A stretch of 64,000 nt of DNA from Lepidodermella squamata. Taxonomy: Eukaryota > Animalia > Gastrotricha. The notes under the pieces were generated by a model. The model saw only the letters and a program-made list of their open reading frames with translations, was not told where the DNA came from and made no database searches. This document shows, one piece after another, positions 1,140 through 56,918 of this stretch. A program made the position numbers and the translations under genes. Position 1 is the stretch's first letter, and each line of letters starts with the position of its first letter. The stretch spans positions 62,001-126,000 of the forward strand of contig JBLDXI010000105.1 of assembly GCA_047495785.1 (NCBI GenBank). The letters are read 5' to 3'.

Positions 1140-2839
1140 ATGTCGACGTCGATTTTACCAGGATCTTCAAATGCTGCTAAAGCGACGAAAAAATACCTCA
1201 ACTGCAAAGCATGCGACGTTCCGGTGCCGAGGCGGCAGTCGCATCAACCCCGAGTTTGCTCGGCCTGTCACAAGTTCTTCAGACGAAATGCTGAGATTTG
1301 GCGGTCACTTGAATGCAATCATAAATACGAACCAAGGGCTGCTGCAGAACTGCAGGACGATCGGGCTAAGCGGCGATCTATGTGCACGAAATGCCGTTTT
1401 GATAGATGCCTGCAGGCAGGCATGCGAAGTAAGTTATGAACGTGGCGCAACAGTTCGGATAGAGCTTAACCCGAAAGCAGAACTCGAATACGACTTTGCA
1501 GTACGAAGGAAGTTCTGCTTTCGGATTATTAAACAGCGATGCCTATTTAATTAGAAGACACGAGCTTTGCTGCTCTGGAAATTTAGGATCATCCTAATAT
1601 TCGCTAATATTCCATCAATCAATATATGAAATCAGCATCAATCGGTTGACGAATCGATAAATGCCCTGACCTATCCTTTGCTCCTTTGCTGTTCTTGAGC
1701 TCAAACTGCTCATAACAAAATTGTTAGTAATAATTTATGGGCCCCATTGATATAGGCTGAAGAGATTTCATTGGGGATGAAAAACACGGTTTTTGTGGGG
1801 TGTACGAAACATTATGGCAACCCACTGTATTTTTATAATACCGGTTTCTATAATAGGTAGATTTTTTGTTGGCTCTGCAGTGGAAATAGAAAAATTCCCG
1901 TCAACTATGGAGTATTCGCTAGTTGAGGGAACTGTGAGAAAATCAATTGATGCGCAGCTACAGCTTCATGGCTTCGAACATGTGAGAATCTAAAAAAACG
2001 AAATAGCCCGAATACTAAAACTTTTCTTTAGCTGCCAATGAAGTGCAACCACAGTATAAGAGATTTGAAGGATGAAAGGTTTCTGCGAAGCCTCATGACT
2101 GGAAACGTTGCTGGCATTATGCGTCTTGGCTTGAATTTTTCGAATTACATTCAAGGTTTGAAGGTTTAGGCATAATCAATAATGAAAACTATACAAATCA
2201 TTTCACAAGAATCTTTCAACTTGAGCCAGACTGAAGTTAATACCCTGCTTGCTCGCAACTGGAAACTTATCACAGTCGCTTACTCGGCTCTTCCAGGCAC
2301 CAGCGGATGCTTACTGGCGAATTACGATATTCTTCCGTTTTTTCTAGAAAGCAACCCCGAACTTTTAGTAAGTTATTTCATTTTGTTGTCCGTCATAATA
2401 TTTTTACAATTTATATAGCCAGCTAAGGCCTCTTGCAGTAAAGTTGCTGATTCCATGGGGGAATGGAACCCGTCGTTTATCGAAGCAGCTCTCTTCACAT
2501 GTCGACTGTTTTTGCAAAGTAAATTAAATAATTACGTGACACATTTGGATTTCCGATTCAAAAACATTCCTAGATCCAGATGAAGTCGAAACATCTGCGA
2601 ATTTACGGGCTGCACGGGATTGTGTCGATAAGGCATTTGAAATGACCTGTTGGAAACTTCATGGATCCAATTCCGGTCGTGTGAGGATGCAAAGTTCCAT
2701 TGTCGAAAATCTTATCGGGATTACGGCGCGAGTTGTTGACGAGTGCGCCACGGCTGTTATAAAACGGCTGGGAGCAGAATCTAGCCGCGCGGAACTCGCC
2801 TTAGCCGTCGAATTCACTTTGGGAATTCCTTGTTCGTGA
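1140..2839 (+). CDS. R1: divergent nuclear receptor (atypical C4+CHC2 DBD, LBD), 6 exons, 353 aa
   Basis: Exons 1140-1428, 1857-1981, 2032-2155, 2210-2367, 2419-2518, 2574-2839 have GT-AG boundaries and are in frame. CKAC..CSACHKFFRR..CNH..CTKCRFDRCLQAGM; LBD-signature-like FNLSQTEVNTLLARNW. Confidence 0.88.
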
Positions 2840-2997
2840 GAGCTATACCAGAAAAATTGAACAATCAAACATTCGGGTATATAATAATATCTGCGCAATG
2901 CGCAAAGATATTCCTAAAAAGGATGTATTAGATGATATATAAATAAAATAGTGCAGAAAAAGAAAATGAGAGAAGCTTGTCGGTAAAGAATATCAAA

Positions 2998-3653
2998 CTA
3001 GTCATTAGCGTTTCCCAAAAAACTTGGCGCAAGTTGGTGCGATGCAAGGATGGGACATTCGCACCAACTTTCAAGTGTCCTATGTGCCTCAAATTAAAAG
3101 TGTTAAAAATAGATCGGCGATCGGCACTTCGAAACAATCTCGATCGGACTTATTGTATAAAACAGTGGGATAAATTCTCATTTTGTTGTCTGGCCCGGCC
3201 GAGCTGGAAGTCCCCCTGAAAGTCGCACACTGGATTACGGTAAAAAATGCCGCTGAACAAGATGGCGACATCAAATCTTTTGTATCTGTAACCGATAATA
3301 GATTATCGGAGGCTAATCAACAGATCGGATTTCAAATTTTGTTTCTTTTTTTCAACGGCTGATCGATCAATCGAGTCGATTCCACGGACGAAAAATTGTT
3401 TTTAATTCCATTGGATTACGATTCATTGACCCTGTAAGTCAAATAAAATAATCATTTAGCGTCATCACCATATAGCGACAGTGTCGAGATTCGATTTTTT
3501 CGGGGATCTGATTTATTTCATCTGAACGAAATGGCCAATAAATTAATGACCGCGGTGAAATACGGTAAAAGATTTTGATACTGGATCTATCGAGCTACCC
3601 ACCGACCACCGAGCTCCAATAGATAATATACAGAGACAATAGATTAGTATAGA
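2998..3653 (-). mobile_element. Helitron-like non-autonomous element
   Basis: On the minus strand it begins A|TCTATACTAAT and ends CTAG|T. Hairpins lie near the 3' end (aacttg-gcg-caagtt at 3021-3035; aagttggtgcga/tcgcaccaactt). No TSD. Confidence 0.5.
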
Positions 3654-3980: not shown

Positions 3981-4025
3981 TTGCCCTGAAGAAGCTTTAA
4001 TAAATAAAGCGAAACGTCCGCGACT
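3981..4025 (+). ncRNA. Minimal hammerhead-ribozyme-like motif (Penelope/retrozyme type)
   Basis: CTGAAGA, then stem II GCTTTA-ataaa-TAAAGC, then GAAACGTC. Stem I is imperfect. Confidence 0.5.
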
Positions 4026-7148: not shown

Positions 7149-8925
7149 ATGACAACGTTTGAAGCTGATACTTCTTTTTTCTCTCAGGTAATCGAACCTC
7201 CTCGGCGCTTGTGCAAAGTTTGCGGTCTTGTAGCGACGAAACGCCCCAACTACCAGCCGCGAGCTTGTGCCGCGTGTGAAAAGTTCTTCAGGCGTTGTGT
7301 CGAACAGTGGCAAACACTGGAATGCAACCACAAACACGTAAGTGCTGACGAGCCTATAACCACGAGGGACATGCGGCGTAGCATGTGCAAGAAATGCCGA
7401 TTCGAACGATGCATCCGAGCCGGCATGAGAAGTAAGTTCCCAACATGCATTGCTATCAGAATCTCAAAACTAGTACTGTAGCTGTTCAAACTAGTAGCGA
7501 TGGTCTCGTTCAAGTCCAGTCTACCGCGGCTTTTTTGAATTTTTCAAATGCTATCGTGCATCTATCTTTATATGTAAAAGTATTTGTCGAAATACTTACC
7601 CTTACCCCTTCCTTGTTTGAAAGTCTGGGTACATTGGATGAAGCGAAGCGTTAGAGTAGGTATCGCAGCCCCGGTTCGCAAGGTCAAAGTGGAAATAAAA
7701 AACATTTAACTTCTAGCCACTAACCACCTTCATAATTGTTCATGCTCCAGGTAAATTCATGATGCAGCATACGAGAAAAGGCGTAGCCATTCACTCGGGC
7801 CCAACGTCTTTGGCTGGTACGATTGTAGAAGATACGCTGGAAAAAGCTGTCGATGTTCAACTGCTGCTCCACGGTCTCGATCACGTAGTTTGAACAATCT
7901 AGTTATGCGTTTTGAATAGCCAGTTTTATGTTTTAGATGCCGATGAGGAAAACCTATGTAGATGACAACTATTGCAACTCTGAGGTCATTAAAAAGCTCT
8001 TTTGCGATCATATTGTTGATTATCTACGACTCAGCCGAATGTTTTGCGACAAAATTCAGGGTAGGTTTTAAAACCAGTGAAGAATAATAGCATTTTTAAA
8101 CGTGAATTTACCAGAGTGTTTCAAAATGAACGAATCTGACGTGAAGCGCCTGGAAGTTCGTTGGAAGAGTGTTGTTCTGGCCTACTCCTCTCTGCCGAGC
8201 GTCAGTGGCTGCCTCACAGCTAATTCCAGTCTTCTACCCAGTTTCGTACTCAACTTCCCAGAGGTTTTGGTAACAATAACAATAATTATACATCAACTTT
8301 CAGCGCAACTAAAGAAGAAAGGGAATAATTAGCTACAATACGGCGCAATTTGTTCCTTCAGTCGAAATTTTACTTTTCCTATGACAATGATTTCAAACTT
8401 TTGTTACCGTATGCGGTAAACTCTTCCATCTTCCGCACCTGGGGCGGATTTTACCCACTAACCGGCGCTTGTTCTATGTAATTTTTAATGACTGGGCCCT
8501 TTCACTTTTTCAGCCGGCCACGGCTGCGGAAAACAAATTATCAGACGCCATGAGCGCATGGAATCCAAGCTTCATCGAACTTGCTCTTCTCACGTGCCGA
8601 CTGTTCCTCCGCAGTAATAGTTGTCGCATAAGTTTGTTTATGACTTTTTACCGTTATTCGAACCTATACAGGCAATTGTGGGGATTCGGATGGTATACAA
8701 ACAGCGCGTAGGCGTGTCGACATTGCATTCGCCATGATTTGCTACAAGCTGCACGGCGCTGGAGTGGAAAAGGTCATGCGGGATGTTTCCACTGTTGAAC
8801 AACTCGTCGACGTGGCATCGCGAGCTCTGGCGAATAGCGGCGCTGCGATTTTGAAGCGACTCACATCGACGTCCGGCTCTGCAGACTTAGCTCTAGGCAT
8901 CAGGCTCACGCTCGAAGGTGAATAA
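7149..8925 (+). CDS. R2: divergent nuclear receptor, E-type (P-box CAACEK), 349 aa
   Basis: Exons 7149-7431, 7751-7884, 7937-8060, 8115-8269, 8514-8613, 8672-8925 are in frame; same intron positions and phases as the paralogues. Confidence 0.9.
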
Positions 8926-10748: not shown

Positions 10749-12034
10749 TCATTTTTTGACGTTGAAGATGCACTTTGTTATCTTGACCTCCCCGCCGGAC
10801 ATCGTCATTTCTCGCCGCCGGAGAACAGCAGCTCCGCACTCGTCGATAACGCTCGAAGTCATGGCTATCAAGTTTTCAGCGATGGCTATTTCATGCAAAG
10901 CCCGTGCCATTTCGGAACAATGAAGCTTCGAGCAGATCATCATGAACGCTGTTTCAATTCTTTTCTGAGCTCTGAGAAACGCCGAAGATTCCCCATCACC
11001 TTTAATAGAATTCGGAAAAATGAAAAAATAAACATCAATAGCTAACCTCTGAAAAACAGCCGACAGGTAAAGAGAGCAACTTCAACGAGAGTAGGATTCC
11101 AATTGCTCAATGTCACAGAAAGCTTCGTTTCCGCATCCTTCGCTGGCTATACAGAGAATACGAATTGCAATGGATGAAATCAAGCGCAAACTCACTAGGA
11201 ATTCAGGGTTCACATCAAGAAATGCTGGGAGAACGTCTTGATGCACGAGAAAGCGACCCGAAGCCCCCGGCAGAGCAGAAAACGAAACCGTGATGTCTTT
11301 CCAATTGCGAGCCATCAGTACTCGTACTTCGCTTTCGTTTAATCTAAACGTCTCTGTAATGAGATCAAAGACATTGGAGGTAGATCCGAAATCATAGAAT
11401 TTTACCCGACATGAACTTTGAGAACGAGATGTTCAGTCGCATCAACGCAATGACATTAGAAAACATAAGTGCGGCCATGACTCTGCCATCGCTCAAATCC
11501 GATGATTCGGGAGCTTTCCTTAGCGGAAGCTGCGAAAACAAAGTCGTCAGAGTTGTCGATAATGAATCGTTAAAAACCTGTTCAAGGTCGTGAAGCTTCA
11601 ATTGTGTGTCGAGAGCTAGCCTGAGAGCTTCTTCGAGATCAAGGCCATCCGTCAACTGAGGACTTCGCTCGATATTTTCCCTTTCAGCTCCTAACATCTG
11701 TTCTAGATATTTACCTGGATATTTGCATGGGGAGAGGGACGCATTTTTTTCGGTTATAATTACCTTTTCAAAAATACTCACATTTCATCCCAGCCTTGAC
11801 GCACCGGTCGAAACGGCATTTCGTGCACATGCCTCGCCGATGAATTGCGCTGTTTTGCGACTCGCCAGATTTCCCTTTCTTGTGGTTGCACTGCAACTGC
11901 AGGTAATGATCTGCGTTCCGTCGGAAGAACTTCTGGCAAGCATGGCAAACGCGGGGCTGAAAACGCCCCCTTCTAGACACGGCCAGGCCACACACCCTGC
12001 ACTTCGGAAGAGCCGGTGGTGCAACTTCAGTCAT
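10749..12034 (-). CDS. R3: divergent nuclear receptor, Q-type (CHACQK), 340 aa
   Basis: Exons 12034-11782, 11714-11578, 11529-11406, 11353-11196, 11146-11047, 10999-10749 are in frame. Confidence 0.9.
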
Positions 12035-13391: not shown

Positions 13392-13703
13392 AGTGCTTCC
13401 ACTTACAAGAGTCAACAGTTGGAACTGTTTTCGCTCGCGGCTGGAAGAACATTTGCGCGGCGTATACAGCTGCAACAGCTAGCTAATCCTGATATCCTGC
13501 CCCCTGCTCTTGTTTCTCCACCAGTACCCTGAACCCTGAACTTCGCGTGAGTTTCGCTTCAAATTTTAGCAGCATCCATCAACGCATATTGTTCATTTGT
13601 TCCAGCCTGTAAACGCTGCTGGAGAAAACTTGGCGGCTGCCATGAGCAAATGGAACCCAATTCTCGTCGATAATCGAATTTTAGGGGAACGTGTGTTCCT
13701 CGA
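13392..13703 (+). pseudogene. Orphan LBD fragment (exons 4-5) of the same receptor family
   Basis: ag|ECFHLQESTVGTVFARGWKNICAAY..stop/frameshift..ANPDILP, then ag|PVNAAGENLAAAMSKWNPILVD, homologous to exons 4 and 5. No DBD exon was seen nearby. Confidence 0.75.
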
Positions 13704-14065
13704 ATGCGCGCGTTTGCCTACGACATATATCCCACATCCGATATATAGAATGCTCTGAATCATACTCATATTTAAGTACTTCCTAGAGCTTCCTCACAGG
13801 ACAGAAATCGATGCAGCATATCCAACTGAGCACGTTGCAGTCTGTGAAACGACGGTGCGTCAAATTAGCCGTAGTGCCATGCGTTAGTTAACTGTTAAAT
13901 AGCTTAGCAGTACTCCATATTTTTTTACGCACAACGAAAATGAATTGAAGCATAATATTTTCCTAACAAAATTTAGCAATTTTTTGAGCAGAGAATTCGC
14001 ATTCTTTGATTTACAATACGTCTGTTTCAACTGCATCAGCGAGAAATTCGCAGCTGTGGATAATA

Positions 14066-15034: not shown

Positions 15035-16734
15035 ATGACAGCTTTTGAGGACAACATCAAGTTGGTTTCTCAAATTAACCAACCGCCTCAGCGCCTTTGC
15101 AAAGTATGCGGTCTCGTAGCGACGAAACGTCCCGCTTACCAACCGCGAGCCTGTGCTGCTTGCGAAAAGTTTTTCAGACGCAGTGTCGAACGGTGGCAAT
15201 CACTGGAATGCAACCACACTTACGCGAGTGCTGGCGATCCGCCACCTAACTCGAATATGCGGCGTAGCATGTGCAAGAAATGCCGGTTCGAAAGATGCAT
15301 CCGAGCTGGCATGAGAAGTGAGTTTACACAACATTTATTTATAAGGAGCATCTGTGTTCCGAGAGCAAGGTGAGACTTTCAGAGTGATGGGGATATCATC
15401 CGAACGGGCGAAAAAATGAACATTTTGTCCGCTGTTGGTGCCACGCGGCTACTCTGAGTTGGAAAATAATTCGCAATGAACGCGGGTGAAATCTCGATAG
15501 GTTGGAAATATGTTGTATTTTTATTGCGATCAAGAGAAGCTTTCTCTATTTGACAAAAGACTCATTCGTAGATGATCAATAATTATTCCTTATTCCTAAT
15601 TATTTATTCCTCTAAATTTCAGATACTTGGAAACTTACAAAACATTTTATCTAGCTGTGTCTAGTTAAAATTAGATTTTCAATTGATCCGTCTCCCGTCT
15701 AAAATTGTTATTAATTTTAATTGTTAATCAAGGTAAATTTCTGACACGCCCCGATATCAGAAATGCATCCAAGCAGGCGATTGATGTATGCCCATCGTCA
15801 TCGACTGGTTTCGTAGTGGAAAATACGTTGAAAAGAGCTATCGATATTCAACTGTTGCTTCTCGACCTAGAAAACGTATTTTCACTGCCAATTTTAGTTT
15901 TATTGAGACAAATGAAATAGTTACCTCTTAGTTACCACTGAAGACCACCTCTCTTGAGGAGTTATCTTGCAACTCCCAGGACATCTCGAAGCTGTTCTCT
16001 AGCACAATGGCTGGCTTTTTTCGGGTGGCTCAAACGTTTAGCGATCAAATGCAAGGTATGGTCTCAGAACTTGAAAAATATGTCTTCATATGTGTATTTC
16101 CAGCTTATTTTTGCTTGTCCGAATGTGAATTGCAGAGCCTTAGAGCCAGCAATTGGTGGAGCGTTGGGGTAGCCTACTCATCTCTGCCCAACAACACCGG
16201 CAGACTTATGACTAATCCCAGTGTCCTACCATTATTCCTTGCCACTTTTCCAGAAGCTCAGGTGATTCACTTGAATCTTGAGGTCCGATTTCGACAATAG
16301 CTTATCGTTTATTTTCTTTTAGCCGGCAAAAAATGCTGAAAAGAAATTGGCAGAAGCCATGAGCCAATGGAATCCCAGCCTCATCGAAATAGCTCTACTG
16401 TCTTGCCGCCTGTTTCTCCGCCGTGTGTGATTCATCTAGCAATATATAGATAAATGGCTTAATTTTTATGTGAATAGGTACTGGCGATTGCGAGTCATCT
16501 GGCATTAAAGCAGCGCGAAAGCGTGTTGGAATAGCTTTCGAATTGATGTGCTACAAATTGCACGGCTCGAACGCCCCGAAAGTCATGCGATACGTAACCA
16601 ATCTTGAATCTCTCATCAGCCTCACGTGGCGAGTTGCCTTCGATTGCTGCGCCGTGCTTATGAAACGACTCGCAGCCTCGTCCAGCTCGAATGAAATTGC
16701 TATTAGCAACAAGCAAATGCTCGATTTGATGTAG
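15035..16734 (+). CDS. R4: divergent nuclear receptor, E-type, 354 aa
   Basis: Exons 15035-15317, 15733-15875, 15932-16055, 16104-16261, 16323-16422, 16478-16734 are in frame. Confidence 0.9.
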
Positions 16735-17161: not shown

Positions 17162-18691
17162 TCACATCTTGTCAATCACACCGAGCGTGAACTTGATGCC
17201 GAGTGCCCTTTCGTCGTGGCTAACTGAAGCCTCGAGTTTCTTCATAACTGCGACGCTGCAATCGTCAATAACTCGCGAAGTGAAGCCGATGAGGTTTTCA
17301 GCTTCCGAAACCTTCTTCATCACTTGCGCCATTCGTTGGCCGTGCAGCCTGTGGCAGATCAAAGCAAAAGCCGTATCAACACATTTCCGCGCTGCTTTCA
17401 CGGCAAGTGACTCATCACAATTGCTAGCACCTTCAAATACAACGTAACTGAGTATAGAAATGATTATTCAAGGTTTAAGGCAGTATTATACCTCGCAGAA
17501 ACAGGCGGCACGAGATCAGAGCTATTTCGATGAGGCTTGGGTTCAATTCGCTCATGGCTTCCGAAACTTGGCTCTCAGCAGCTCTGGCCGGCTGTAAAAG
17601 AGATATATTTGATGCGAATAGTGGGAAAAGTGTCAATTTTACCATAACTTCTGGAAAATTGTCCAGAAGACTGGGTAAAACACTGGAATTGGCTAAAAGC
17701 CCGCCGCTAGTGCTCGGTAGAGACGAGTAGGCTACTGTGACGCTTTTCCAGTTTCGAACTAGCAGCGATTGCACATCAGATTCGCTCAAGTTGAAATTTT
17801 CTAATAACTGCAAATTTTGAAAAACAACAGTGTTACAAAAAATCGAAGCCATACCCAGCATTAGGCAGCCAAACTTTCGGCCGAGGTGAAGGAATGCTGC
17901 CATGTTGACGAAAATAAGCTTTCTAATGAACTCAAAATCGCACATGTGAGCATCTACAAAGGTGCTCCTCGTCGGCAGCTGTTGAAATGATGATCTGTAG
18001 AACGCATTCATTAGTGAAGATGAGCTTTAAAATACCTGCTCGAGGCCGTGAAGAAGCAGTTGAAGGTCAATGGCTTTTTCCAGCGTATGCTCAACTATAA
18101 AACCATATTTTGGCGATGGGCACATATCAACCCCCAGATTTTGTTCGACTTTGAATTCCGCATTCGTCAGATATTTACCTTTGAAGCATGAACAGTTACT
18201 GATATAACAGTAATTTCCTAATCATCTCATTTTGATGTTTTGTGTTCAATTTCTCATCCTTTTTGTTGTTGTAAGTCTAGTAACATTTAAATAGAAAGAA
18301 TTTGAGCCCCAGAAAGAACGGCGTGCTTCTACAACCATGGCGAACAGCCGAAATTCGCAAATGCTAATCTAGCTCCCAGATTCGGAGTATCTCGCCTGAG
18401 GATCCGAAATGTAAATCAATCTGAAATGCTTAATTTACTTTTTAGACCAGCGCGAACGCATGCTTCGAATCGGCATTTCGAACAATCAAATTTGCACCAA
18501 TCTCGAGGACTTTTCGCTTTTGCCAAAGCCGTTGCATGAAAGTCGTGGTTGCACCTCAACCGCTGCCATTTCTCACAGTTGCGGCGGAAAAATTTCTGAC
18601 AAGCCGCACAGGTTCGGGGTTGATAACAGGGGCGAGGTGGCACAAGGCACCCACAAACCTTGCATATTGCTATTGAATTAAAAGATGTCAT
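17162..18691 (-). CDS. R5: divergent nuclear receptor, Q-type (CAACQK), 348 aa
   Basis: Exons 18691-18439, 18178-18036, 17978-17855, 17800-17643, 17591-17492, 17430-17162. Clearest LBD signature of the set: FNLSESDVQSLLVRNW. Confidence 0.9.
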
Positions 18692-26429: not shown

Positions 26430-28390
26430 ATGACAACTTTTGAAGCTGATACTACGTTTTTTTCTCAAGTAACGGAAACGTCTCAGCGCCTCTGCAAAGT
26501 TTGCGGTCTTGTAGCGACGAAACGTCTCAGCTACCAGCCGCGAGCTTGTGCCGCTTGTGAAAAGTTCTTCAGACGCAGTGTCGAGCATTGGCAATCACTG
26601 GAATGCAACCACAAGTGCGCAAGTGCTGATGAGCTTATAACCACCAGGGACATGCGGCGTAGCATGTGCAAGAAATGCCGATTCGAGAGGTGCATTCGAG
26701 CTGGCATGAGAAGTAAGTTCACACCAGGCAGCAGGCCGCGCAACTAGCGAAAATACAATGTCGCTAGTTGTTCAATCTTCGTAATGTAGCGATGATCCCA
26801 CAGCACTGGGCCTGGTCTAACGGGGTTAGTTTAGTCACTAGAATTTTTAGTCTTAGTCACTAGTCTTAGAATTTTTTTTCGTGTTTTCCCCGTGAATATA
26901 TTTTTAATTACAGTATTCGTCGAAATACTAATCCCTCTCCTTGTTTAGTCTCGTTTAAAATTCACATACGGAAATTTGTTTGAAATTGAAACTTTGTTTG
27001 ATTGGCTACTATAGCCACATTCATAATTGTTCATGATTTATGCCAGGCAAATTCCTGATGCCTCCTGCGAAAAAAGACGTGATACAACCGGTGATAGATA
27101 TGGGCCTATCGTCATCGGCTGGTACCTTTGTGGAAGATACACTGGAAAGAGCAATCGACGTTCAACTGCTGCTTCACGGCCTCGAACAGGTATTTTAAAC
27201 GCTGATGTTGCGCTTTGAATAGCCTATTTTATAATTTAGATGCCGATGAGAAAAACCTACGTCGCGGATAACTTTTGCAGCTCTGAGATTATTAAAAAGC
27301 TCTTTTTTGATCATATTGTTGATTATCTACGGCTCGGCCAAATGTTTTGCGACAAAATTCAAGGTATGGTTTCAAAACGATCGAAGAACTGTTGTCAAAA
27401 CGTGAATATAATATATTAGAGTGTTTCAAAATTACCGAATCTGACGTCAAGCGCCTGGAAGTTCGTTGGAAAAGTGTTGTACTGGCCTACTCATCTATGC
27501 CAAGCGTCAGTGGCTGCCTCACTGCTAATTCCAGTCTCCTACCCAGTTTCTTGCACAATTTCCCTGAAGTTTTAGTAATATCCATAATAATTTTATAACG
27601 TGGTGCATTAATTTTTGTAAAGGAAAGAATTAGCGCATTTTTTTTGAAGTCGAAATTATAATTTTCCCATGAGAAAATTAGGAAAGATTGCAATATGTCA
27701 ACAAATTATTATTTTTATTTATTTAAAGAGCCATAACGCCCAGAAGAGGACAGTTCAGACAAGTGATCAATAAAAAAGTAGAGACAACAACAAAATTGAA
27801 AATCGAAATAGCGATAATTAAACCCGAAAAATACCAGTAAATTTCCAACTACTTTCTAAATCGGGAAAAAACCTTCCCGCTCGAGGATCCTACTTCGTAC
27901 CCTGAGTTTAGGACCAACGACCGTGTGGCTTTCCTTGAAAGTTGTATAATGTATAATTTACAATGACCGGGACTTTTCAGCCGGCCAAAGCTGCGGAAAG
28001 CAAACTATCAGAAGCCATGAGCACATGGAATCCAAGCTTCATCGAACTTGCTCTTCTCACTTGTCGACTGTTCCTCCACAGTAATGATTGTCCTTCTAAA
28101 AATGGTTTAATTATTTTTTGCCATTAACAGCTGCAGGCAATTGTGAGGACTTGACTGGAATGCAAGCAGCGCGGAAGCGTGTCGACATTGCTTTTGCCAT
28201 GGTTTGCTACAAGCTGCACGGCTTTAGAGTGGCAGAAGTCATGCAGGATATTTCCACTGTTGAACATCTCGTCGACTTGGCTTCGCGAGCTCTGGCTGAT
28301 AGCGGCGCTGCGATTTTGAAACGACTCGAAGCGACGTCGGGCTCTGAAGAATTAGCTGTAGGCATCAGGCTAACGCTCGAAGGCGAATAG
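26430..28390 (+). CDS. R6: divergent nuclear receptor, E-type, 354 aa (closest to R2)
   Basis: Exons 26430-26712, 27047-27189, 27240-27363, 27420-27574, 27981-28080, 28131-28390 are in frame. Shares the 155-nt exon 4 with R2. Confidence 0.9.
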
Positions 28391-28763: not shown

Positions 28764-30637
28764 TCAATTTGTGTCAACACCGAGCGTGAATATGCTGCCG
28801 AGAATCTTTTGTTCGCTACTAACCGAGGCTTCGAGTCTCTTCATAACTGCGACGCTACAATCGGTGATAACCAGCGATGCAAAATCGATGAGTTGTTCAG
28901 CTTCAGCAACCTTCTTCATAACTTGCACCATTCGCTGGCCGTGCAGCCTGTGGCAGATCGTGGCAAAAGCTGTTTCAACGCATTCTCGTGCTGCCTGTAC
29001 GCCAGGTGAATCGTCAATATTTCCAACTCCTTAAAATATAACTCGATAGAATGGACATCAAAGAATTTAAGGCGAATAGCTACCGCGGAGAAACAAGCGA
29101 CAAGACATAAGAGCTATTTCGATGAGACTTGGGTTCCATTCGCTCACGGCTTCTGAGACCTGGTGTTCAGCAGCTTTGGCCGGCTAAAACATAAATAATT
29201 TAGTTAATTTGTGTTCAATTAATTTGGTTAATAATTATGAATAATAATATTCTAGATAGCTTGAGATGGCCCGAGCCGAATAAAACAAAATATTTCTTCA
29301 ATGATCAAATTCTAAGACAGCGCAGCTGCATCGAAAAAAAATGCAATCGTTTTTCCCATGAGCAAAGTATGCCCGAAGCCCGACTATAATAATAACTGCT
29401 GCTGATAACTGGTTTGCTGATTACTGTTTCAATTAACAATTTTCAGCTTTACCAGAACTTCAGGATAAATGTCGAGAATACTGGGTAGAAGGCTGGAATT
29501 GGCCAATAGCCGGCCACTAGTGCTCGGCAGAGACGAGTAGGCTACTGCAACGGCCTTCCAATTGCGAACCAGCAGCAACTGCACATCGGACTCTCTCAAA
29601 CCGAAGCAGTCTTATGATTCAAAATTAAAAAGAATCAGTTTAGTCAAAGTTCAGAAGCCATACCCATCATTACGCTGCTAAACAACCGGCCGAGACTAAG
29701 AAAGCCTGCCATGTTATCGAAAGTAAGCTTTTTAATAAAGCCAGAATCGCAAATGCCATTCTCAACATAGGTACTCCTCATTGGCAACTGTAAAAGCGGA
29801 AATACGCCACTATTCTCAAGAACGATTTCATAAAAAAAGTACCTGTTCGAGGCCGTGAAGCACCAGTTGAACATCAATGGCCCTATCCAGCGTATGTTCT
29901 ATTATTGAACCCACTGTTGACGACGGTTCTAAATCGATCCCGAATTTCGGTTCGCTTCTGCATTTGACATTCGTCAGGTATTTACCTTGAGTATAAACAG
30001 ATTAACGTAGCATTTTTGCCATATTTTCAGTTTGTTGTCATTCGTGTTATTGTCAGAAGTGTGCGAAGTACCGGATGGTTAAGGGGTACAGTACACCGTA
30101 CTCCCACCTCGGGATTTCCTGGCAAGAAAGCCCCAAAAAACCACAGGGGGAAGGAGGACCCTTTTGTCTGATAAATTCGGGGCTGAGAATACAGAATTCC
30201 CACGCGTACCACGCTATAAAGCAAACATTGAGAGCTCATTGACATTCTCCGAGTTTGCTTCCAGCGTGTCTTGCTTTCCGGGTCACACTAATGCTTTATT
30301 TGCAGCTGGTTGGCGATTCTAGCTAAAGGAAATTGCTCAAGGCTCCAGGGAAAATTTTTTTGTGATCTGATAGTTTCTCCTTACTTTTGAGACCAGCGCG
30401 AACGCATGCTTCGAATCGGCATTTCGAACAATCGAATTTGCGCCAATCTCGAGGACTCTTCGCTTTTTCCATAACTGTCGGATCGAAGTCGTGGTTGCAC
30501 TTCAACCGCTGCCATTTCTCACAGTTGCGGCGGAAAAATTTCTGACAAGCCGCACAGGTTCGTGGTTGATAACAGGTACGAGGTGGTACAAGGCACCCAC
30601 AAACCTTGCATGGTATAATTGACTTCAAGGATTTCAT
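28764..30637 (-). CDS. R7: divergent nuclear receptor, Q-type, 347 aa (closest to R5)
   Basis: Exons 30637-30385, 29985-29843, 29787-29664, 29610-29453, 29183-29084, 29029-28764 are in frame. Confidence 0.9.
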
Positions 30638-31727: not shown

Positions 31728-31940
31728 CAAGCAATAAAATTTGCGCCAATCTCGCGGACTCTTCGCTTTAGCGATTGCCATAGCATCGGAGTCATGGCTG
31801 CACCTCAAGCGTTGCCATTTCTCACAGTTGCGGTGAAAGAATTTCTAGCAAGCAGCACAAGTTTGGGGCTGGTAATAAGTGCGAGGTAGCACAGAGCATC
31901 CACAAACCTTGCATACTGTAATCGGCTTCGAAGTTTTCAT
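31728..31940 (-). pseudogene. Solo DBD exon pseudogene (R5/R7 type)
   Basis: MKTSKPITVCKVCGCSVLPRTYYQPQTCAAC*KFFHRNCEKWQRLRCSHD..SPRDWRKFYC has an in-frame TAG in the P-box. It is truncated next to a ~110-bp inverted-repeat element (about 31616-31727). Confidence 0.85.
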
Positions 31941-34629: not shown

Positions 34630-37620
34630 ATGTCATCGTTTGAAGCCACATCAGATGGGCTATCATTTTCTTCTCAGGAAATAAAGCTGCCCCAATGCCG
34701 GTGCAAAGTTTGTGGTCTCGTGGCGAGGAAACGTCCCAGCTACCAGCCGCGAGCCTGTGCCGCTTGTGAAAAGTTTTTCAGGCGGACTGTCGAGCATTGG
34801 CAATCACTGGAATGCAACCACACTTACGTGAGTGCTGGCGAGCCTCCAACCTCGAGGGACATGCGGCGCAGCATGTGCAAGAAATGCCGATTCGAAAGAT
34901 GCATTCGGGTTGGCATGAAAAGTAAGTTCATATCTACAAATAATGACAATTTTCAGCAAATCGCAGCCAATTTTTCTATAAAAGGTTTAAGAAGTGCTAA
35001 ATTGTCAATTAAAAAGGCCACAAATGACCACAAATGAAATGATTTATATTACGTCCTCCAGTGGAATTAAAAAAGTACAACAAAAGTACCAAATTCCAAA
35101 ATACCCGTGCGGGTTTTGGGGACGGCGACGGGCGATCAGCTTGAGTCCGAGAGATCAGTCGCGAACAGTCTGCTTTTATTATAAAATTCATAATTTTCTA
35201 TAGTTAGGCAAGCCATCTGCTATTCATCTCGATTTCTGGCTGTGATTTCAGCTAATTCCCAATCAGCTATTATTTTGATTTTGGTGCGTCGCAAGTTTAA
35301 GGTCGATTTCCTGGGCCTTCCCCGTTTTTTCGGTTCATTTGGATTTTGTAGCCTTATGATGCGGTGCTCTACAATACCGATTTTTATCAAACTTCGTCCA
35401 ACACAATTTACCCACCTGGTTGGCGGTCTTCCCCGTGGGAAGAACCAGCTTGGGTCGACCGCTTTCCAGTAATAAATTTTGCTCACAAGACTTTCAGTGT
35501 CATATTCGTCCTGACGGATAATATGTCCTAAGTATTTCAACCTAAAAATTAAAAAGGGCTCAGGAAAAAGGGAGCAAAGTAGGGAATCAGGACTATTATT
35601 TATTAAGAGAAATTCGATAAAGGTCCCTCCTTTGATCTTTGGATGGAACAGTAATGAGACTTATCAGGACGCCGGAGCTTTATAGAATAGCGTAGTATTG
35701 AATAGTCCAGTAAGTGTCGCAGATATTTAATAAGGAGGATTCAAGCATGATTCGAACCCCTGCGTCCTGGTTCGTCTCATGCTTAGAATCGAAATACCGG
35801 GAATGCTTTTGACGCAGACATTTGTGGCTGCTGAACGCAAAACGGTTTGTTTGTTCATTCCCCTTTCAGTGAAGAGGAAGAACTGCCAACTTTTGGACCT
35901 ACATTTCTTCAATGACTCACTTTCATGAATGATGAATGGTTTCATTCAATCGATAGTTAGGAATTTCAATGACACTCATGGAAATGAAATAGGTTGCAAT
36001 TTAGCTTATCACTTAGCGCATCAAATACTTACCCCCTCACTATTCGCTATGTCCTAGCTGTACTCCTAATTGTTCATGCTCAAGGTAAATTCCTGAGGCA
36101 TCCTGCGAACAAAGACGTACCACAACTGGCGATAGATGTTTGCCCCTCGTCATCGGCTGGTTCGATTGTGGAAAAAACGCTGGCAAAAGCAATTGACGTC
36201 CAGCTGCTGCTTCACGGCCTAGATCAAGTATTTTGAACGACAGTCTTCATTTGATGCCTTTAGACATATATTTGTGTTAACAGCTGCCATTGAGGAAAAC
36301 TTATGTTAATGATAACTTTTGCGACTCAGCAGTCATTAAGAAGCTACTTTTCGACCACATCATGGATTTTTTACGGCTCGGTCGAATTATTAGCCAGCAA
36401 ATGCGAGGTAAGGTTTCAAAATCATGAAAAATGCCGCTTTTAAATGTGAACTTTTCAGATTGTTTCAAGCTGACCGAATCTGATGTGCATTTCCTTGGTG
36501 CTCGCAATTGGAAGAGCATTGCAGCGGCCTACTCCTCCCTACCAAGCATTAGTGGCTGTCTTCTAGCCAACCCCAGTCTTCTGCCCAGTTTCTTCCGCAA
36601 TTACCCGGAAGCTTTAGTAATATTATTTGCTGACAAATGCTTTATAAATGTGACGTGTGCCAAGGGCGTATGACGTAGATAGGGCGTCACGTGGAGAGGT
36701 TTTCGGACACGAAAACTGAAGTCAGACCATCTCATATTATCTGAAATCATCGTCAACACTTCAACTGCCAAAAATAGACTGCGAGGTCCGATATTTGGAT
36801 CCAAATCCTGAATCCTCAAAAGTCGTTTTTCGGGTCAACAATGCGTCGTAGAGCAAATTACCTTGCGGCAAAGTGTAGGCCATGACCCGGTAGTTGTTTT
36901 GACTCCGAATTTGGGACAAGAGAGTTTGAGGAACGCGCAGAAAACTAACTTGTTGATCATCGAGTAAACTGTAAGATGTTGTATAGACTTAACTGTATTC
37001 GTTATTCCTTTTAAATTTACCAAACGAACGTAGGTGGGAAAGGGCTCCATCAAGAAAAGTGCCCAAGGGCACTGAAAAGCTTGAAACGGCGCCAGAGGAG
37101 ATGCATTCCGCCAGTATATTTACTATCTAGCTTACTTCTGGTAGATTCTGGTAGATTCTCTATGCAATTTGTAAACAGTAAACATATAACACTTCTTATT
37201 ATATCAGCCAGCTAAAGCTGCTGAAAACAAGCTATCAGCTGCCATGAGTGGATGGAACCCTAGCCTGGTCGAAATAGCTCTGCTCACTTGCCGGTTGTTT
37301 CTTCGAGGTATTATAATTGCCCAGCTAGACAATGGCAGATTACTCATTTGCGATTTGCAGGTGCAGACAATTTTGAAGACTTGCCTAGCATACGAGCCGC
37401 ACAGAAGCGCGTCGAAATAGCTTTTGCTATTACATGCGGCAAGCTACATGGCTCCAGAGCCCCGAACGTTATGCGGAATGTTTCCGCCGTTGAACGTCTC
37501 GTCGACCTGGCATCTCGAGTTCTTAGTGATTGTGGCACCGCGATGTCGAAACGACTCGAAGCCACGTCCGGCTCTGAAGAGTTAGCTCTAAGCATCAGGT
37601 TTACCGTCGAAGGTGAATGA
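34630..37620 (+). CDS. R8: divergent nuclear receptor, E-type, 358 aa
   Basis: Exons 34630-34921, 36085-36227, 36284-36407, 36459-36616, 37208-37307, 37361-37620 are in frame. Confidence 0.9.
35220..35540 (-). mobile_element. 3' fragment of an RTE-like non-LTR retrotransposon in R8 intron 1
   Basis: KYLGHIIRQD..KIYYW..PRGRPPTRW resembles the C-terminal GH..RPRGRP..RW motif of RTE-clade ORFs. Confidence 0.65.
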
Positions 37621-39679: not shown

Positions 39680-41209
39680 ATGAAATCTTTTAGGGCTGAT
39701 GATGGAGATGACGTGGCCGCGTTTTTCCCTCGCGAAGTCAAGCCGATTCAGTGCCGGTGCAAAGTTTGCGGTCTTGAAGCAAAGAAACGTCCGAGTTACC
39801 AGCCGCGAGCCTGTGCTGCTTGCGAGAAGTTCTTCAGGCGAAGCGTCGAGCATTGGCAATCACTGGAGTGCAACCATACCTCCGCTAATGCAGGCGAGCC
39901 ACCGACTAGCAGGGACATGCGACGTAGCATGTGCAAGAAATGCCGATTTGACAGATGCATTCGGGTTGGCATGAGAAGTGAGTTCACACTAGGCCCATTA
40001 GGGCCAAGTCAACAAGATCAATGAACCGTGGCATGAACTTTTCTAGTTAGCAAGGTCCCAAATTTGAAGAGCCAAACTTAGGAACAGCAGAGAGCTGTGA
40101 GCATAAGCATTTATTCCACTTGGAAATAGGCTTGATAGGTGTATTTGATATAATCCTAACTCAACTGTCTTCGAGCTAGTTTCCTGTTTTCTAATAAATG
40201 TTCACACTCAAGGTAAATTCTTGGTGCATCCATCGAAAGAAACACCGAAACTGGAGATAGATATGGACCCATCGTCTTCAGCAGCTTCGATGGTAGAAGA
40301 TACGCTGCAGAGAGCAATCGACGTTCAACTGCTGATTCACGGCCTAGATCACGTATTTTGAACGCTAATCGCAATTAGGAGCATTCAAGTACCATATATA
40401 TTCTATTTGATAGCTACCATTGAGGAAAACCTATGTTAACGATAGCTTCTGCGACCCTGAGGTCATTAAAAAGCTTGTTTTCAACCACATTGTCGATTAT
40501 AGACGACTCGGCGGAATTATTTGCCACCAAATGCAAGGTAATGATTCAAAGCCGTGAACGTGAATCTATTTTAAAACCGGATTTTTTAGAACGTTTCAAG
40601 CTGACCGAATCTGATGTGCAATCTCTGGGGATGCGCAACTGGAAGAACATTGTACTGGCCCATTCAGCTCTACCGAGCAACAGTGGCTGTCTTTCAGCTA
40701 ATTCAAGTCTTCTGCCCAGTTTCTTTTTCAATTACCCGGAAACCTTAGTACTATTAGTAGTTACTCGAAATTTTTCATGAAAAGTTAATGCTTACTTTTC
40801 AGCCGGCCAGAGCTGCCGAAGGCAAAGTATCAGCCGCAATGAATGAATGGAACCCGAGCCTCATCGAAACAGCTCTTTTCACTTGCCGCCTGTTTCTTCG
40901 AGGTATGAGAATTGCCAGAGCAAATTTGAAATAACAACTTCAGTGCGATTCGCAGGTGCCGGCAATTGTGCAGCGAGGAAGCGTGTCGAAATAGCTTTTG
41001 CCACCATGTGCTACAAGCTGCACGGCTCCAGAGCGGCGAAAGTCATGTGCGACGTTTCCACTATAGAAAGTCTGGTCGACATGGAATCGCGAGTTCTCAA
41101 TGATTGCGGTGTTGCGGTTATGAAAAGACTCGAAGCTTCGTCCGAGTCTGAAGAATTGGCTCTTAGCATCAGGTCAACCCTTGAAAGTGAACATTATGAA
41201 ATCAAGTAA
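39680..41209 (+). CDS. R9: divergent nuclear receptor, E-type, 357 aa
   Basis: Exons 39680-39977, 40213-40352, 40414-40537, 40590-40747, 40803-40902, 40956-41209 are in frame; short in-frame deletion at the start of exon 6. Confidence 0.88.
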
Positions 41210-41333
41210 TTGTGACTCGATAAAAAATGTTTTCCTCATTGTGTATTTTATATTTCAGGCTGCTATAAAAAGTAGCATAATGGCTGCAAGCCAACATTTT
41301 GACGCCCTGTTTAAACGCTAATTTTACATCACA

Positions 41334-41842: not shown

Positions 41843-42142
41843 CATTACCCCTAATACAACAATCAAAAGCTGTTACTCGGTTTTGGAGAACTAATTGCTG
41901 ACAATCTAGTCCGGTCAGCTTGTTGAACGATCTAGCTATCGAGATTGGATTCTCAGCAAGTAGTTAAGAAACCAACGACTTCTTTTATTTGGAATGCAAA
42001 ATAATAAAATTATTGACAGATATTATTTGTCCAGACGGCTTTTCTGGACATTACCCGTTGCAAAAAGACGTCTCAGACCCCTCGCTTATATTCAGTCTGG
42101 ACAGTTATTTTGGAAATTAATTAAATATCAGGTAGCACGGTA

Positions 42143-43460
42143 TCAAGTGTTGAACGTAAGTTTGACGACGACGCGATCATTTTCGCTTATTTCGCCCAAC
42201 CGCCGCCTCTCCGAAACGGCGGCTCCACTCTGGTCGAGTAAGTTCGATTCTACGGCGAGCAGCCGCTCGATAGTTTTCACCTGCGTCACCGACTGGTCAG
42301 GATTCTCCCTGAATCGCCGTGAGCATATCAGAGAAAACGCTGTATCAACTCGCCGCTTTAGATAACGAGACTGCAGGCTGTATGTCTCATCATCTACGAC
42401 TTCAAAATAAGGAACAAACTTAAGATTGCTGAGACTGTTATTTTAATACAGTTGGAAACTTACTTCTCAGGAAGATTCGAAGCATCAAAACCGCTATTTC
42501 AGGTAGTGTAGGGTTCCATTTACTGATTTCAAAGGAAACTTCATCCTCAGCTTCAGCAGCGCACTGAAATAAGTATATTTCTAGATAGTATAGGGAAATA
42601 AAAAAGGAAAACTGACCCGCATCTCCGGATTGAGGTTCAGGAAATGCGCCAAATTATCAGGCCCTACTAAAACACTGCCTGTAGTCGACGGCAGAGCTGA
42701 ATAGGCCAAGGTTATCGGCTTCCAGCCTCCACGCATCATTGCAGCGACTTCTCTTTCTGGTATCTGAAATGAATCTAAGGGACACGGGGTTTAATTGCCA
42801 GGAATCGAAAGAAAACATACCTTTCAGGAAAGACGTGAATTCAAGCCCAATACGCAAAATTTCGCTGATATTTTGCATTAAAATTCGCGAGAACGTATGT
42901 GGGTTGTACATATCTTCAACGCTGATGTTCTTCCTCAACGGGAGCTACAAATTAGGATAAAAAGCTCTGTCACAATGAAAACCCCGAGGCTCACAAATTC
43001 AAGCTGGTGAAGATGAGTTTGCGCCGTTATTGCCAATCGAATGATGTTCTCAACGTCCTCTCCGTTGTAAACAGTTGGGTTGTCTATCAGCGAGCAGTCA
43101 CTGCTCGAGACTGAATCCAGAGATTGGTTCTCAGATTCCATCGAATGGCGTGCCATATATTTGCCTAAAATCAGAATAAAATAGTTTAAGAAGTTCTCTT
43201 TTGCGCGATTACTCACTTTTCATGCCTGCGCGAACGCATGCATCGAATCGGCATTTCGAACAATCATACTTGTGCAACTTCGGCTTCGATTTTGCCGTTG
43301 CAGCAGCGTCATGGTTGCATCTCAGCCGCTGCCAGTTCTCACAGTTGCGGCGGAAAAATTTCTGGCAAGCCGCACAGGTTCGGGGTTGAAAAGTAGGGCG
43401 GGGAGACACAGCGCAGTCGCACACTTTGCACTTTGCAGAGGACGACACTGAGGATTTCAT
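42143..43460 (-). CDS. R10: divergent nuclear receptor, Q-type, 350 aa
   Basis: Exons 43460-43217, 43164-42995, 42944-42821, 42774-42617, 42563-42464, 42399-42143 are in frame. Confidence 0.9.
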
Positions 43461-53994: not shown

Positions 53995-55297
53995 CTCGAC
54001 AAAAAATGCGAAGAACTTGAGCGATGTAGTCGAAATGCGGCAGGCCACATAGCGATGATTGATTGAATCTAAAGGCGCTGGCTGAACGTGGTCATATCTC
54101 ATGTGATTACCCGGCGTATAGGTGGAATATGTATTCAGGAATTCGTAATTAGCCTGCTAAGGCGCAGTGGCGTTAGCAAATAAAAGGACTGGATCGAAAA
54201 CATTTTTGCAGTAGATCCGAGAGGCGCCAGGTCTGATTTTGTCCAAAAAGCACATGCGAATAGTTTGACAGACAATCAGGCTGAATTTAATCTACTCACC
54301 AGGCACGAGTTGTTGCCGTTGGTGCGATGGTAAATTGTTAAATTGTTTATCAAACATTTTTCCAATTTTATTGATCGAAGGCAATTCATTTAGATGGAAA
54401 ATTCACAGAATAATTACCTATACTATTAATTTCTTATTAAAACTTTTTTATCGTTCGAGAGATACTCGCTGGTTCAGAAGTTTCAGGAAAAAGATTGCTT
54501 CAGCTCAGTTTCTTATTTTCGATCAGAAGTAAACCAGCCGCTAAAACTGCTTGACTTTGTAATTCAGCCAGGCCAGACCACAGCAACATCAGCCAAAGTG
54601 CAAATTCCGTCCGCTGTCGACTGCGAGTGGCTTCTTCTGACGCGAGAGTGGAATCTCGTCTCTCGAATGTATCGCCGTGTTGCTACGGCCTAAACCTAAA
54701 GCACTTGCCTCATCATGTCATTTTCAACTCCGTACTCCGCGAAATGGCGCGTCTTATTTCTTCTGCTGCTGCGATAGATTGAACTAAAACAAGGGCCTCA
54801 ACGCCTAATCACAAATGCATTGTCAAAGAGAGATAATAATGTCGAAATGTCATCAGTTATTGCTACCTCTGGATGAAGGTACCTAGGGGTGTGATTTTTT
54901 GCCGTGTTGCTATGTACGCTGTAAACTGTAAATATGTTGTCAGAGTTCATCTATATCGAATAAATGACTCGAAAAAATCTATACGTTTTACCCAAAATTT
55001 TGCACAGATAATGACACAAAATTCTCTTGTTTAGCAGCTCGGAAGTTTTATGTCAGTTTCCAGCCCTGCAGCACAAGGAAAGAAAAGTCTGAAGATGACT
55101 CATGTTTTAATAAAACTGCCCTTGTCCAGGCGCTAAACTAAGAATCTATGACAATTTTTTGAATACATAACTGGAAATTGTTCTGAATTTTATTCGGGCG
55201 ATCCTGAATCCCACGGTTTCATAGGCTAGGCCAAATTTGTCTGAGAGGCAAGCCAGAGAAGACACAGTGTAAGCAGATGTTGTTACACTTTAAATTT

Positions 55298-56918
55298 TCA
55301 CAGTTTGAAAGCCAATCTCACGACAGCTGATTCTGCTTCGACCTGACGCCGATGCGCAATGGCTGCACCGCTCTCGTTGAGCTTATCAGCAGCATCGCTC
55401 GCTAGTTTCTCAATCGTTTGAACACGGCCCCATGCTTGCTTAGGGTCGTCTTGGAAACGCCGCGAGCACACCAAAGAGAAAGCGTTGTCAATGCGTCGCT
55501 TAACATTATCCATTCGAGGACTCCTCCTGTCATCGAATCCTAAAGAGCAAAATGATCCTTTAATTGGCACAGGAACACAAAGCCCAATCCCCACTCCTCT
55601 GATATCCTGAGTTTAAGAGGTCATTTGGCCATAAGAGCCAAAGTGAACTAAAACATCCTGCATTAGAATCGCCTTGAATTTCAATTCTGGGAAATAACCA
55701 GTTTCTCGTTTTTTTCATCACCTCGTACCTTTCACGAATAGCCGAAACATGAAAAGGGCGATCTCCAGCATGGATGGATCCCATTTGCCGACTTCAATTG
55801 CAAGCTTTTGCTCAGCCTCAACAGCGCACTGAAAGCAGATTTATTTAAAACAAAATATGGTCATATTAACCGCCTCACCCGCATTTCTGGATTCAAGGCT
55901 AGAAAATAAGGCAGTACTTCTTGGCCAACCAAAATACTTCCACTTGTTGCTGGAAGTGCAGAGTAAGCAAGCGTGACGAGTTGCCACCCTTTCCGCATCA
56001 TTTCGAAAGCTTCTTTATCGGGAATCTCAAAGGAGGCTGATGAAATTACATACAGACTCAAAATGGGTGTACATATGAAACTAGCGTGAAATGTGAAATA
56101 GCTTCAACTATTCACTCTAAAAATGAGAATAGTATTTACCCTGCATAAGTTTCGTGAACTCGAAGCCCAATCGCAAGATCTCTGAGAGGTTCTCATGCAT
56201 CAAGCCGAACATACATCGGGGGTCCGCAAACGCACTTTTTTCGATTGGCCTCCTCAGCGGCAGCTTCAATTCAAGAAATGGCAAACAACCGTTAAATTGG
56301 TGCGGTCCATTACAATCTATAAACTCACGAATTCCAGATCATGCAATTGTGTTTGGGCGACAATCGCCAGTCTGAGCACGTTTTCAACATCCTCTCCGTT
56401 GTAAATTGTTGGATTTTCAATGATAGAAGAATCCGGCGAGTCGTCGACTGCAATCGCATTTGTATCGGGGGAAAACGGGCCATCAAATTCTATCTTAGCC
56501 AGGTATTTGCCTGAAATGGAAAGAAAGTCATCAAAGATTGCTGGAAACCATAATCCAAGCAACAAGCAATCAAAAAATCAAGCAAGACTAATAACAAATT
56601 ATTACCACCAGAAAAAATAATGTTTACAAGATTCGGCAGTAGGCACCTAAGAAAAACGGGAAACTTATTCGGCTTACTTTTCATGCCTGCCTTCAAACAA
56701 GCTTGGAAGCGACACTTTGAGCAGTCGAAGCGTAGCGAGTAAATTCGGGTCTGCTTGCCATTTTCGCCGTGGTTGTGAGTCATGCTGCGCCATCTCTCGC
56801 AGTTTCGTCTGAAGAACTTCTGACAAGCCGAACACGCTCGGGGCTGATAATCCGTTCGAGGTGGCACTATCAACCCGCAAACTTTACACCTCGGCAGCGG
56901 CTGTTTTGATACATGCAT
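55298..56918 (-). CDS. R11: divergent nuclear receptor, Q-type (CSACQK), HNH variant, 348 aa
   Basis: Exons 56918-56678, 56510-56329, 56263-56140, 56036-55879, 55828-55729, 55539-55298 are in frame. LBD is closest to R10. Confidence 0.88.

Follow-up and report, generated by a model that had tools for sequence, protein, structure and literature searches.

How far can the layout of a nuclear receptor DNA-binding domain (DBD) depart from the usual one while selection still maintains the domain? The canonical layout has eight cysteine ligands (C-x2-C-x13-C-x2-C plus C-x5-C-x9-C-x2-C) and is among the most conserved motifs of animal transcription factors; the D-box, in the second finger, is a textbook determinant of how receptor dimers are spaced on DNA. 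The question is raised by a stretch of 64,000 nucleotides from the gastrotrich Lepidodermella squamata (contig JBLDXI010000105.1), which we call the window, and within which all positions below are counted. The window contains part of a large tandem array of a lineage-specific nuclear receptor subfamily, with 11 genes (R1 to R11) that are intact and under selection. All 11 have lost the sixth cysteine of the layout (Cys6). Our explanation, which we hold with a probability of about 0.6, is that an invariant histidine two residues after the fifth cysteine (Cys5), His46 of our alignment, is the relocated ligand of the second zinc, giving a Cys-His-Cys-Cys site.

The array encodes nuclear receptors

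A six-frame scan of the window gave 12 matches to receptor-type fingers, of which 11 were uninterrupted and one contained a stop. We located the 11 DBD segments with a stricter pattern and aligned them to find the invariant columns. The scan and the alignment bear out the span (1140-56918) and the 11 intact DBD exons that a first-pass annotation of the sequence had reported. With HMMER, all four of the DBD exons that we scanned scored above the gathering cutoff of the Pfam family zf-C4 (PF00105; 21.1 bits): R8 at 39.8 bits, R11 at 33.4, R1 at 26.1, and R5 at 22.7. An AlphaFold 2 (AF2) model of the R8 DBD, from a 62-sequence alignment, has a mean predicted local distance difference test score (pLDDT) of 79 and two helices (residues 26-41 and 66-75). 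In a Foldseek search of PDB, the best 50 matches of this model were all receptor DBDs (ERR, RXR, EcR, TR, GR, and AR), with template modeling scores (TM-scores) of 0.58-0.69. Going by the family profile and the modeled fold, the 11 proteins are nuclear receptors with the DBD fold, which in this superfamily consists of two zinc modules that each precede a helix, the two helices lying at right angles. Each has a single-exon DBD, a short hinge, and a C-terminal domain. There is one DBD in each of the 11 models, rather than the two of the 2DBD nuclear receptors.

We built the gene models by dynamic programming on codon bias, then on similarity between paralogues, and then with conserved exon lengths imposed. 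All 11 predicted models have six exons with GT-AG borders, no internal stops, and 327-358 amino acids. Exon 3 has 124 nucleotides (nt) in 11/11, exon 4 has 155 or 158 nt, and exon 5 has 100 nt. Most of introns 2-5 measure 46-65 nt, and intron 1 ranges from 52 to 1163 nt. The DBD lies in exon 1, whose last base is the first base of the Ser codon after GM[K/R]. The genes are compact, the introns are short, and the window as a whole is about 42% GC with no N. Because zf-C4 was above its gathering score in 4/4 scanned exons and all 11 genes gave six-exon models with GT-AG borders, this array of receptor finger motifs is not a product of chance. We also note two 48-nt introns without a stop codon in the reading frame, at 11530-11577 (R3) and 16056-16103 (R4); retention of either would add 16 residues and keep the frame.

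The DNA-binding core is under strong purifying selection. The pairwise ratio of nonsynonymous to synonymous rates (dN/dS, or omega) is 0.06-0.2 in the core of the DBD, where dS is saturated between subgroups in 32/55 pairs. In the C-terminal domain, omega is 0.23-0.44 at dS of 0.35-1.2 (21 pairs with usable dS, which excludes R1, R3, R10, and R11). By contrast, the loop after the CNH motif of the second finger evolves almost freely: over its 16-18 columns, the proportion of nonsynonymous differences (pN) is 0.56, compared with 0.68 for synonymous differences (pS).

Could the 11 genes be recent pseudogenes or drifting, functionless copies? There are two decayed relics in the same array. Also, we found no RNA runs with the array genes. 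The only run that matched, X1, is genomic DNA rather than RNA, as its contigs are colinear with the genome over 39400-43600, introns included. So the expression and the splice junctions of the 11 genes are inferred, and this counts against our account of them as working receptors. On the other hand, the six-exon reading frame is complete in every one of the 11, exon lengths and splice sites are conserved, and dN/dS is well below 1 in both domains at dS that ranges from 0.35 to saturated. We give almost no credence to the idea that these genes lack a function.

The sixth cysteine is absent

In these proteins, the second finger starts nine residues after FFRR with C-N-H; a stretch of 16, 18, or 20 residues separates this from C-x2-C-R-F-x2-C...G[M/L]. 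R11 has H-N-H followed by 15 residues. The first-pass annotation had this pattern right (C-N-H-x16-20-C-x2-C, or H-N-H-x15 in R11, then CRFxxC..GM), and the histidine that it called invariant is so in 11/11 of the aligned sequences. The invariant columns include N45, H46, C65, and C68; column 44 is Cys in 10/11 and His in R11. Compared with the eight cysteines of the usual layout, there are seven Cys and one His (six and two in R11), and the spacing is not the canonical one.

We aligned a profile of the 11 DBDs to solved receptor DBDs. The C of CNH falls on the canonical Cys5, and the His falls on the second residue of the D-box, which by definition comprises the five residues that separate Cys5 from Cys6 (PMC10497141). 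The position of Cys6 and the next nine residues are occupied by variable loop columns. Because these columns stand at the Cys6 site, Cys6 is absent from the second finger in all 11 proteins. The first-pass annotation had also proposed that the D-box is replaced by a long variable loop, and this was upheld: the loop is variable, it is nearly neutral, and it is the part of the R8 DBD model with the lowest confidence.

Which residue holds the second zinc?

Only four positions are invariant candidates for ligands of the second zinc: position 44 (Cys, or His in R11), His46, and the C-x2-C at 65 and 68. Three indirect lines of evidence lead us to propose His46 as the fourth ligand. First, it has been kept while synonymous sites between subgroups became saturated. 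The codons of the CNH motif vary synonymously, with Asn as AAT or AAC and His as CAT in three genes and CAC in eight. Second, in R11 Cys5 has become His, which took two nucleotide substitutions (TGC to CAC); such an exchange is typical of, and tolerated at, metal-ligand positions. Third, a histidine at the same place recurs with the loss of Cys6 in a separate lineage (see below). There is also a precedent for such a site: in RING fingers, a C-x-H pair (the third and fourth ligands) binds one zinc together with a later C-x2-C. By analogy, the geometry that we propose would be chemically ordinary, and this supports His46 as the ligand.

Alternatively, the second finger might keep its zinc by means of Cys5 and the C-x2-C, with water, a loop residue, or the ninth cysteine (the last one in CRFxxC) as the fourth ligand, and the Asn-His pair might be kept because it contacts the DNA backbone or caps the recognition helix. 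Asn45 varies no more than His46 does, which would fit a contact motif formed by the pair, and some copies have an extra Cys or His in the loop (for example, CNHKC in R6, CNHKH in R2, and WCKFDC in R5). However, the loop has no further Cys, His, Asp, or Glu that all 11 copies share, and the ninth cysteine is not a zinc ligand in canonical DBDs. Furthermore, a His at this position tracks the loss of Cys6 in two separate clades, and among the distinct DBDs from our list of hits that retain a Cys6-type cysteine, just 2/179 have it. We consider a fourth ligand other than His46 to be unlikely.

A more drastic alternative is that the second module has no zinc, which would leave a one-zinc DBD that is held together by its hydrophobic core, with the remaining cysteines as evolutionary leftovers. 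The canonical set of ligands is incomplete, and the loop is long and variable. The AF2 model also tells against our preferred site in this respect: the pLDDT of the R8 DBD drops at residues 41-60, with block means of 74 and 53, and it is below 50 at residues 50-52. But with the exception of the Cys-to-His change in R11, C44, C65, and C68 never vary, with omega around 0.1 over saturated dS. In the decayed copy at 31731-31940, which is free of selection, CNH has already become CSH and the C-x2-C has been lost. It seems quite improbable to us that the second module does without zinc.

Evidence from distant relatives

To place the family, we inferred a tree of 62 DBDs. The 11 DBDs of the window form one clade (support 100/96) on a long branch. 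They belong to a larger clade (97/92) that also includes their nearest relatives in public data, a family of receptors from ENA metagenome contigs, with the P-box CEACQK (P0004, P0005, P0007, P0009, P0011, P0015, P0016, P0018, P0020, and P0022/P0164). Neither the branching within this larger clade nor the deep nodes of the tree are resolved. The CEACQK family resembles the window family in having an x14 first finger, a CxACQKFFRR helix, GMKSKF, an aromatic-x-Pro or aromatic-x-Ser/Thr motif before the third cysteine, and a homologous C-terminal domain (hmmsearch, 1e-18). It differs in that its second finger has four cysteines (C-x6-C-x8-C-x2-C), its P-box begins with Glu, and its genes have few or no introns, whereas the window genes have six exons. 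Because the CEACQK family lies in the same larger clade and keeps C-x6-C-x8-C-x2-C, CNH is, going by this comparison of sequences, a derived state. This also supports the view that His46 took over as a ligand.

CEACQK receptors, too, occur in tandem, with few or no introns, on two of the metagenome contigs (L001 7905-11305 and L002 9983-11215). A conserved gene adjoins them; it has no named relative above about 35% identity, so the animal that carries these receptors also has no near relative among sequenced species.

The recurrence comes from predicted public proteins that have several zf-C4 domains in a row: P0001 (876 amino acids) has five, P0002 (875 amino acids) has six, and P0122 (450 amino acids) has three. 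These could be true multi-DBD receptors that go beyond the 2DBD type, or they could be tandem arrays whose genes were fused into one model. P0001 and P0122 group in a clade of their own (97/90). In this clade, Cys6 was lost in three DBDs (two from P0001 and one from P0122), and all three have a C-x-H second finger, with His at Cys5+2. The UniParc entries P0001/P0151 and P0122 are like the window family in that Cys6 is missing from some of their DBDs, which read C-N-H, C-C-H, or C-K-H. They are unlike it in having an x13 first finger, a loop of ordinary length (15 residues from Cys5 to Cys7), other P-boxes, and 3-5 DBDs per protein. Because their clade is separate, the tree indicates that C-x-H arose in them independently. 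P0001 and P0122 may come from one organism, in which case there would be only two independent origins of C-x-H, and this tempers the argument from recurrence. In a word-index search with a P0122 DBD, the sole match was a weak relative from the mite Medioppia.

Recognition helix and proposed mechanism

The first finger is C-x2-C-x14-C-x2-C in 11/11, in place of the canonical x13. Just before the third cysteine, where canonical receptors have HYG, R1 has HQPR, R3 and R10 have FQPR, and the other eight have YQPR. The P-box is CAACEK in R2, R4, R6, R8, and R9 (which we call A-type), CAACQK in R5, R7, and R10 (B-type), CSACQK in R11, CHACQK in R3, and CSACHK in R1. The first-pass annotation was correct in all 11 genes as to the spacing of this finger, the (Y/F/H)QPR motif, and the P-boxes (CAACEK, CxACQK, or CSACHK).

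Canonical receptors bind AGGTCA-type half-sites by means of C-E-G-C-K-G/A-F-F-[K/R]-R. In the window family, FFRR is kept, Glu-Gly is replaced by Ala, Ser, or His followed by Ala, and the otherwise invariant Lys after the fourth cysteine is replaced by Glu, Gln, or His, which is followed by Lys. In nematode receptors, P-box changes of similar size redirect the choice of half-site (PMC12856210; PMC3908500), so it is reasonable to suppose that the preferred half-site is likely something other than AGGTCA.

Taken together, we envision a domain that works as follows. The first zinc would be held by the usual four cysteines, with one additional residue in the loop. At the second site, with the canonical sixth cysteine lost, zinc would be held by Cys5 (His in R11), by the His at +2, and by the C-x2-C that starts the last helix. 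This would be a Cys-His-Cys-Cys site in which a C-x-H knuckle supplies the first two ligands. The region that was once the D-box and Cys6 has become a loop of 15-20 residues that is free to evolve, and the altered helix (A/S/H-A and E/Q/H-K, with FFRR kept) would read a different half-site. To judge from the alignment, the D-box as such is probably gone, and DNA-dependent dimer contacts through it have probably been lost. Contacts between DBDs through the replacement loop are also unlikely, because the loop is unconstrained.

The C-terminal domain

The C-terminal part of these proteins is about 230-250 residues long and very divergent. Is it a ligand-binding domain (LBD)? Several results speak against this. 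The first-pass annotation had suggested a search with Pfam's Hormone_recep, and it came back negative: HMMER gave no match on the C-terminal open reading frames (ORFs) that we scanned (four from R8 and one from R5), nor on the full-length metagenome protein P0164. Similarly, with hhalign, an alignment of seven C-terminal sequences did not match four proteins with a recognized Hormone_recep domain (probability 0.06). And the evidence for an LBD-like fold comes from a model of only middling quality, made for a sister protein (pLDDT 58), whose matches had weak E values of 0.01-0.05.

Other results favor an LBD-like fold. The C-terminal domain is homologous to that of P0164 (1e-18 by hmmsearch and down to 3e-12 by blastp). 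Our AF2 model is of residues 140-435 of P0164, from an alignment that included the window exons, and it has ten helices. Its top 50 matches in PDB were all receptor LBDs, with target-normalized TM-scores of 0.37-0.58. Also, when language-model features of the C-terminal part alone were compared with protein clusters, 54/60 matches were to Hormone_recep clusters. A very divergent LBD-like domain is supported but not proven.

The two domains of R5 and R7 seem to have different histories. In the DBD tree, R5 and R7 group with R10 and R11 (95/95), while the tree of the C-terminal domain places them with the A-type genes (93/95). The opposite groupings fail approximately unbiased (AU) tests (p = 0.012 and 0.0005; the groups to be tested were picked after we had seen the identity matrix). 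Because the trees conflict and the tests reject the alternatives, our results suggest that ancestral recombination or exon shuffling in the long intron 1 placed a B-type DBD exon in front of LBD exons of the A-type.

Layout of the array

The window holds 11 intact receptor genes and two decayed relics, and the outermost start codons of the array are at 1140 and 56918. R1 (1140..2839, + strand, 353 amino acids) has its CNH codons at 1314-1322, followed by a 20-residue loop. R2 (7149..8925, +, 349 amino acids) is A-type, with CNH at 7323-7331 and then an 18-residue loop. R3 (10749..12034, -, 331 amino acids) has CNH at 11882-11890 and then an 18-residue loop. Next comes the first relic (13603..13710, +), an isolated and degenerate exon that resembles exon 5, the exon with the WNP motif; it turned up when the 11 models were compared by tblastn with the window after its genes had been masked (E ~ 1e-4). 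The A-type gene R4 (15035..16734, +, 354 amino acids) has CNH at 15209-15217. R5 (17162..18691, -, 348 amino acids) combines a B-type DBD (CNH at 18545-18553, with a 20-residue loop) with an A-like C-terminal domain. R6 (26430..28390, +, 354 amino acids) is A-type, with CNH at 26604-26612. R7 (28764..30637, -, 347 amino acids), like R5, has a B-type DBD (CNH at 30491-30499) and an A-like C-terminal domain.

The second relic (31731..31940, -) is a decayed DBD exon that is 71% identical to that of R7. A stop interrupts its P-box, its motifs read QPQ, FFHR, and CSH, and it is cut short before the C-x2-C-RF. The same tblastn comparison with the masked window found no exons downstream of it. The next gene, R8 (34630..37620, +, 358 amino acids), is A-type, with CNH at 34813-34821 and an alternative upstream ATG at 34603; its DBD (34684-34923) is the one that we modeled. 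R9 (39680..41209, +, 357 amino acids) is also A-type, with CNH at 39869-39877. R10 (42143..43460, -, 350 amino acids) is B-type, with CNH at 43311-43319 and then a 16-residue loop. Finally, R11 (55298..56918, -, 327 amino acids) has HNH at 56769-56777 (CAC AAC CAC), where His replaces the canonical Cys5, and then a 15-residue loop.

From 7149 to 43460 the strands alternate, with A-type genes on the + strand and B-type genes on the - strand, and R4/R5, R6/R7, and R9/R10 are convergent pairs. R2 and R3 are arranged in the same way, though R3 is neither A- nor B-type. The alternation of convergent pairs hints that the unit of duplication may have been a block of two genes.

Two segments beside R9 are high-copy repeats (39400-39680 and 41230-41940). 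Their summed contig depth in X1 is 280-1900, compared with about 32 over the flanking genes, and they have several joints and loose ends. Between R10 and R11 lie unrelated genes, all on the - strand (46053-47531, 50455-51117, and 51265-51717). These include an ORF of 493 codons with F5/8 type C (discoidin) domains, whose sole relative in the databases is a metagenome protein at 34% identity, and two ORFs with weak matches to Laminin_G_3 or concanavalin-like lectins.

Comparison with known receptors

Has this finger been described before? There are some reasons to think so. A second finger with His in place of Cys has been published: HR96b, or Vitellogenic factor 1 (Vf1), of parasitic flatworms has a CHC2 second finger (PMC8363021). 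The FFRRN of the window family resembles HR96. Also, x14 first fingers and odd P-boxes such as CAACAA occur among the nematode-type matches, so a nematode supplementary receptor might seem to be another candidate. But several lines of evidence make an already described subfamily with the same finger very unlikely. We searched 1.84 billion representative proteins with an HMMER profile of the family, and of 618 matches below 1e-3, none was below 1e-30 and none combined an x14 first finger with CNH. The protein library searched includes a bdelloid rotifer protein (Didymodactylos carnosus), and the lack of close family members in it speaks against a near kinship with any rotifer proteome that it covers. 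Metagenome contigs scanned with a DBD profile gave 146 matches to the pattern, and tblastn found no relative among them. Our full-text searches of the literature, and the papers that we read, turned up no description of a C-x-H receptor finger. And the HR96-like sequences (CESCKAFFRRNA) form a different clade (96/91) from the window family. The first-pass annotation had held that the idea of an unusual family would fail if the proteins fell within a described subfamily with the same CNH finger, and neither the phylogeny nor the databases that we searched put them in one. Because we found no close relative in proteins, metagenome contigs, or the literature, the CNH receptor family appears to be confined to the lineage of this organism.

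Our broader claim is more tentative, and we rate it a little below even odds. The C-x-H knuckle may be a new architecture for the second module, in which a ligand has moved by four positions, the D-box interface has been deleted, and a loop of 15-20 residues has been freed, and which has arisen independently on at least two occasions. Combined with the CxAC[E/Q/H]K helix, it would imply a half-site and a stoichiometry unlike those of any characterized receptor. If so, a multi-copy family that selection has kept, with a ligand moved and the D-box discarded, is a natural test of which parts of the layout are needed for folding and for recognizing DNA. It would also be a second, structurally different case beside the single published finger that contains His, and the change in the second finger is seen in at least two lineages. 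This would be of value for the study of receptor evolution and for the structural biology of zinc fingers. We view it as a variation on a known protein family and not as a new class of system.

The closest published case is HR96b. The first-pass annotation noted that His-for-Cys fingers had been reported in other invertebrate receptors, and HR96b is such a receptor, with the difference that its His is at the position of Cys6. HR96b is reported to be essential for female sexual development, and according to its authors, the CHC2 finger is absent from the receptors of any other animal studied (Wu and LoVerde 2021, PMC8363021). The window family is like HR96b in that a Cys ligand of the second finger is replaced by His, in an FFRRN-type helix context, and HR96b is functional in vivo. 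The differences are in position, gene structure, and copy number. The His of HR96b lies at the end of the D-box, whereas the window family has lost Cys6 and carries its His at Cys5+2. The DBD of HR96b has extra exons and introns within it, and those of the window family are single exons. HR96b is a single-copy group of orthologues of the HR96/NR1J type, while the window family is a tandem expansion that lies outside the HR96-like clade.

The supplementary receptors of nematodes, which derive from HNF4, are another lineage-specific tandem expansion, with divergent P-boxes that alter the recognition of half-sites (PMC12856210, PMC3908500). Like the window family, they are expanded in tandem, and some have an x14 first finger. 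Language-model features of both the DBD and the C-terminal domain of the window proteins also point to nematode clusters. However, the nematode receptors keep a four-Cys second finger, which the window family does not, and we found no phylogenetic link to them in our tree, which included no named HNF4 sequences. As for the zinc site itself, RING fingers are like the proposed site in that Cys and His one residue apart share a zinc with a later C-x2-C; RING is an unrelated domain with a cross-brace topology, and the likeness is one of mechanism only.

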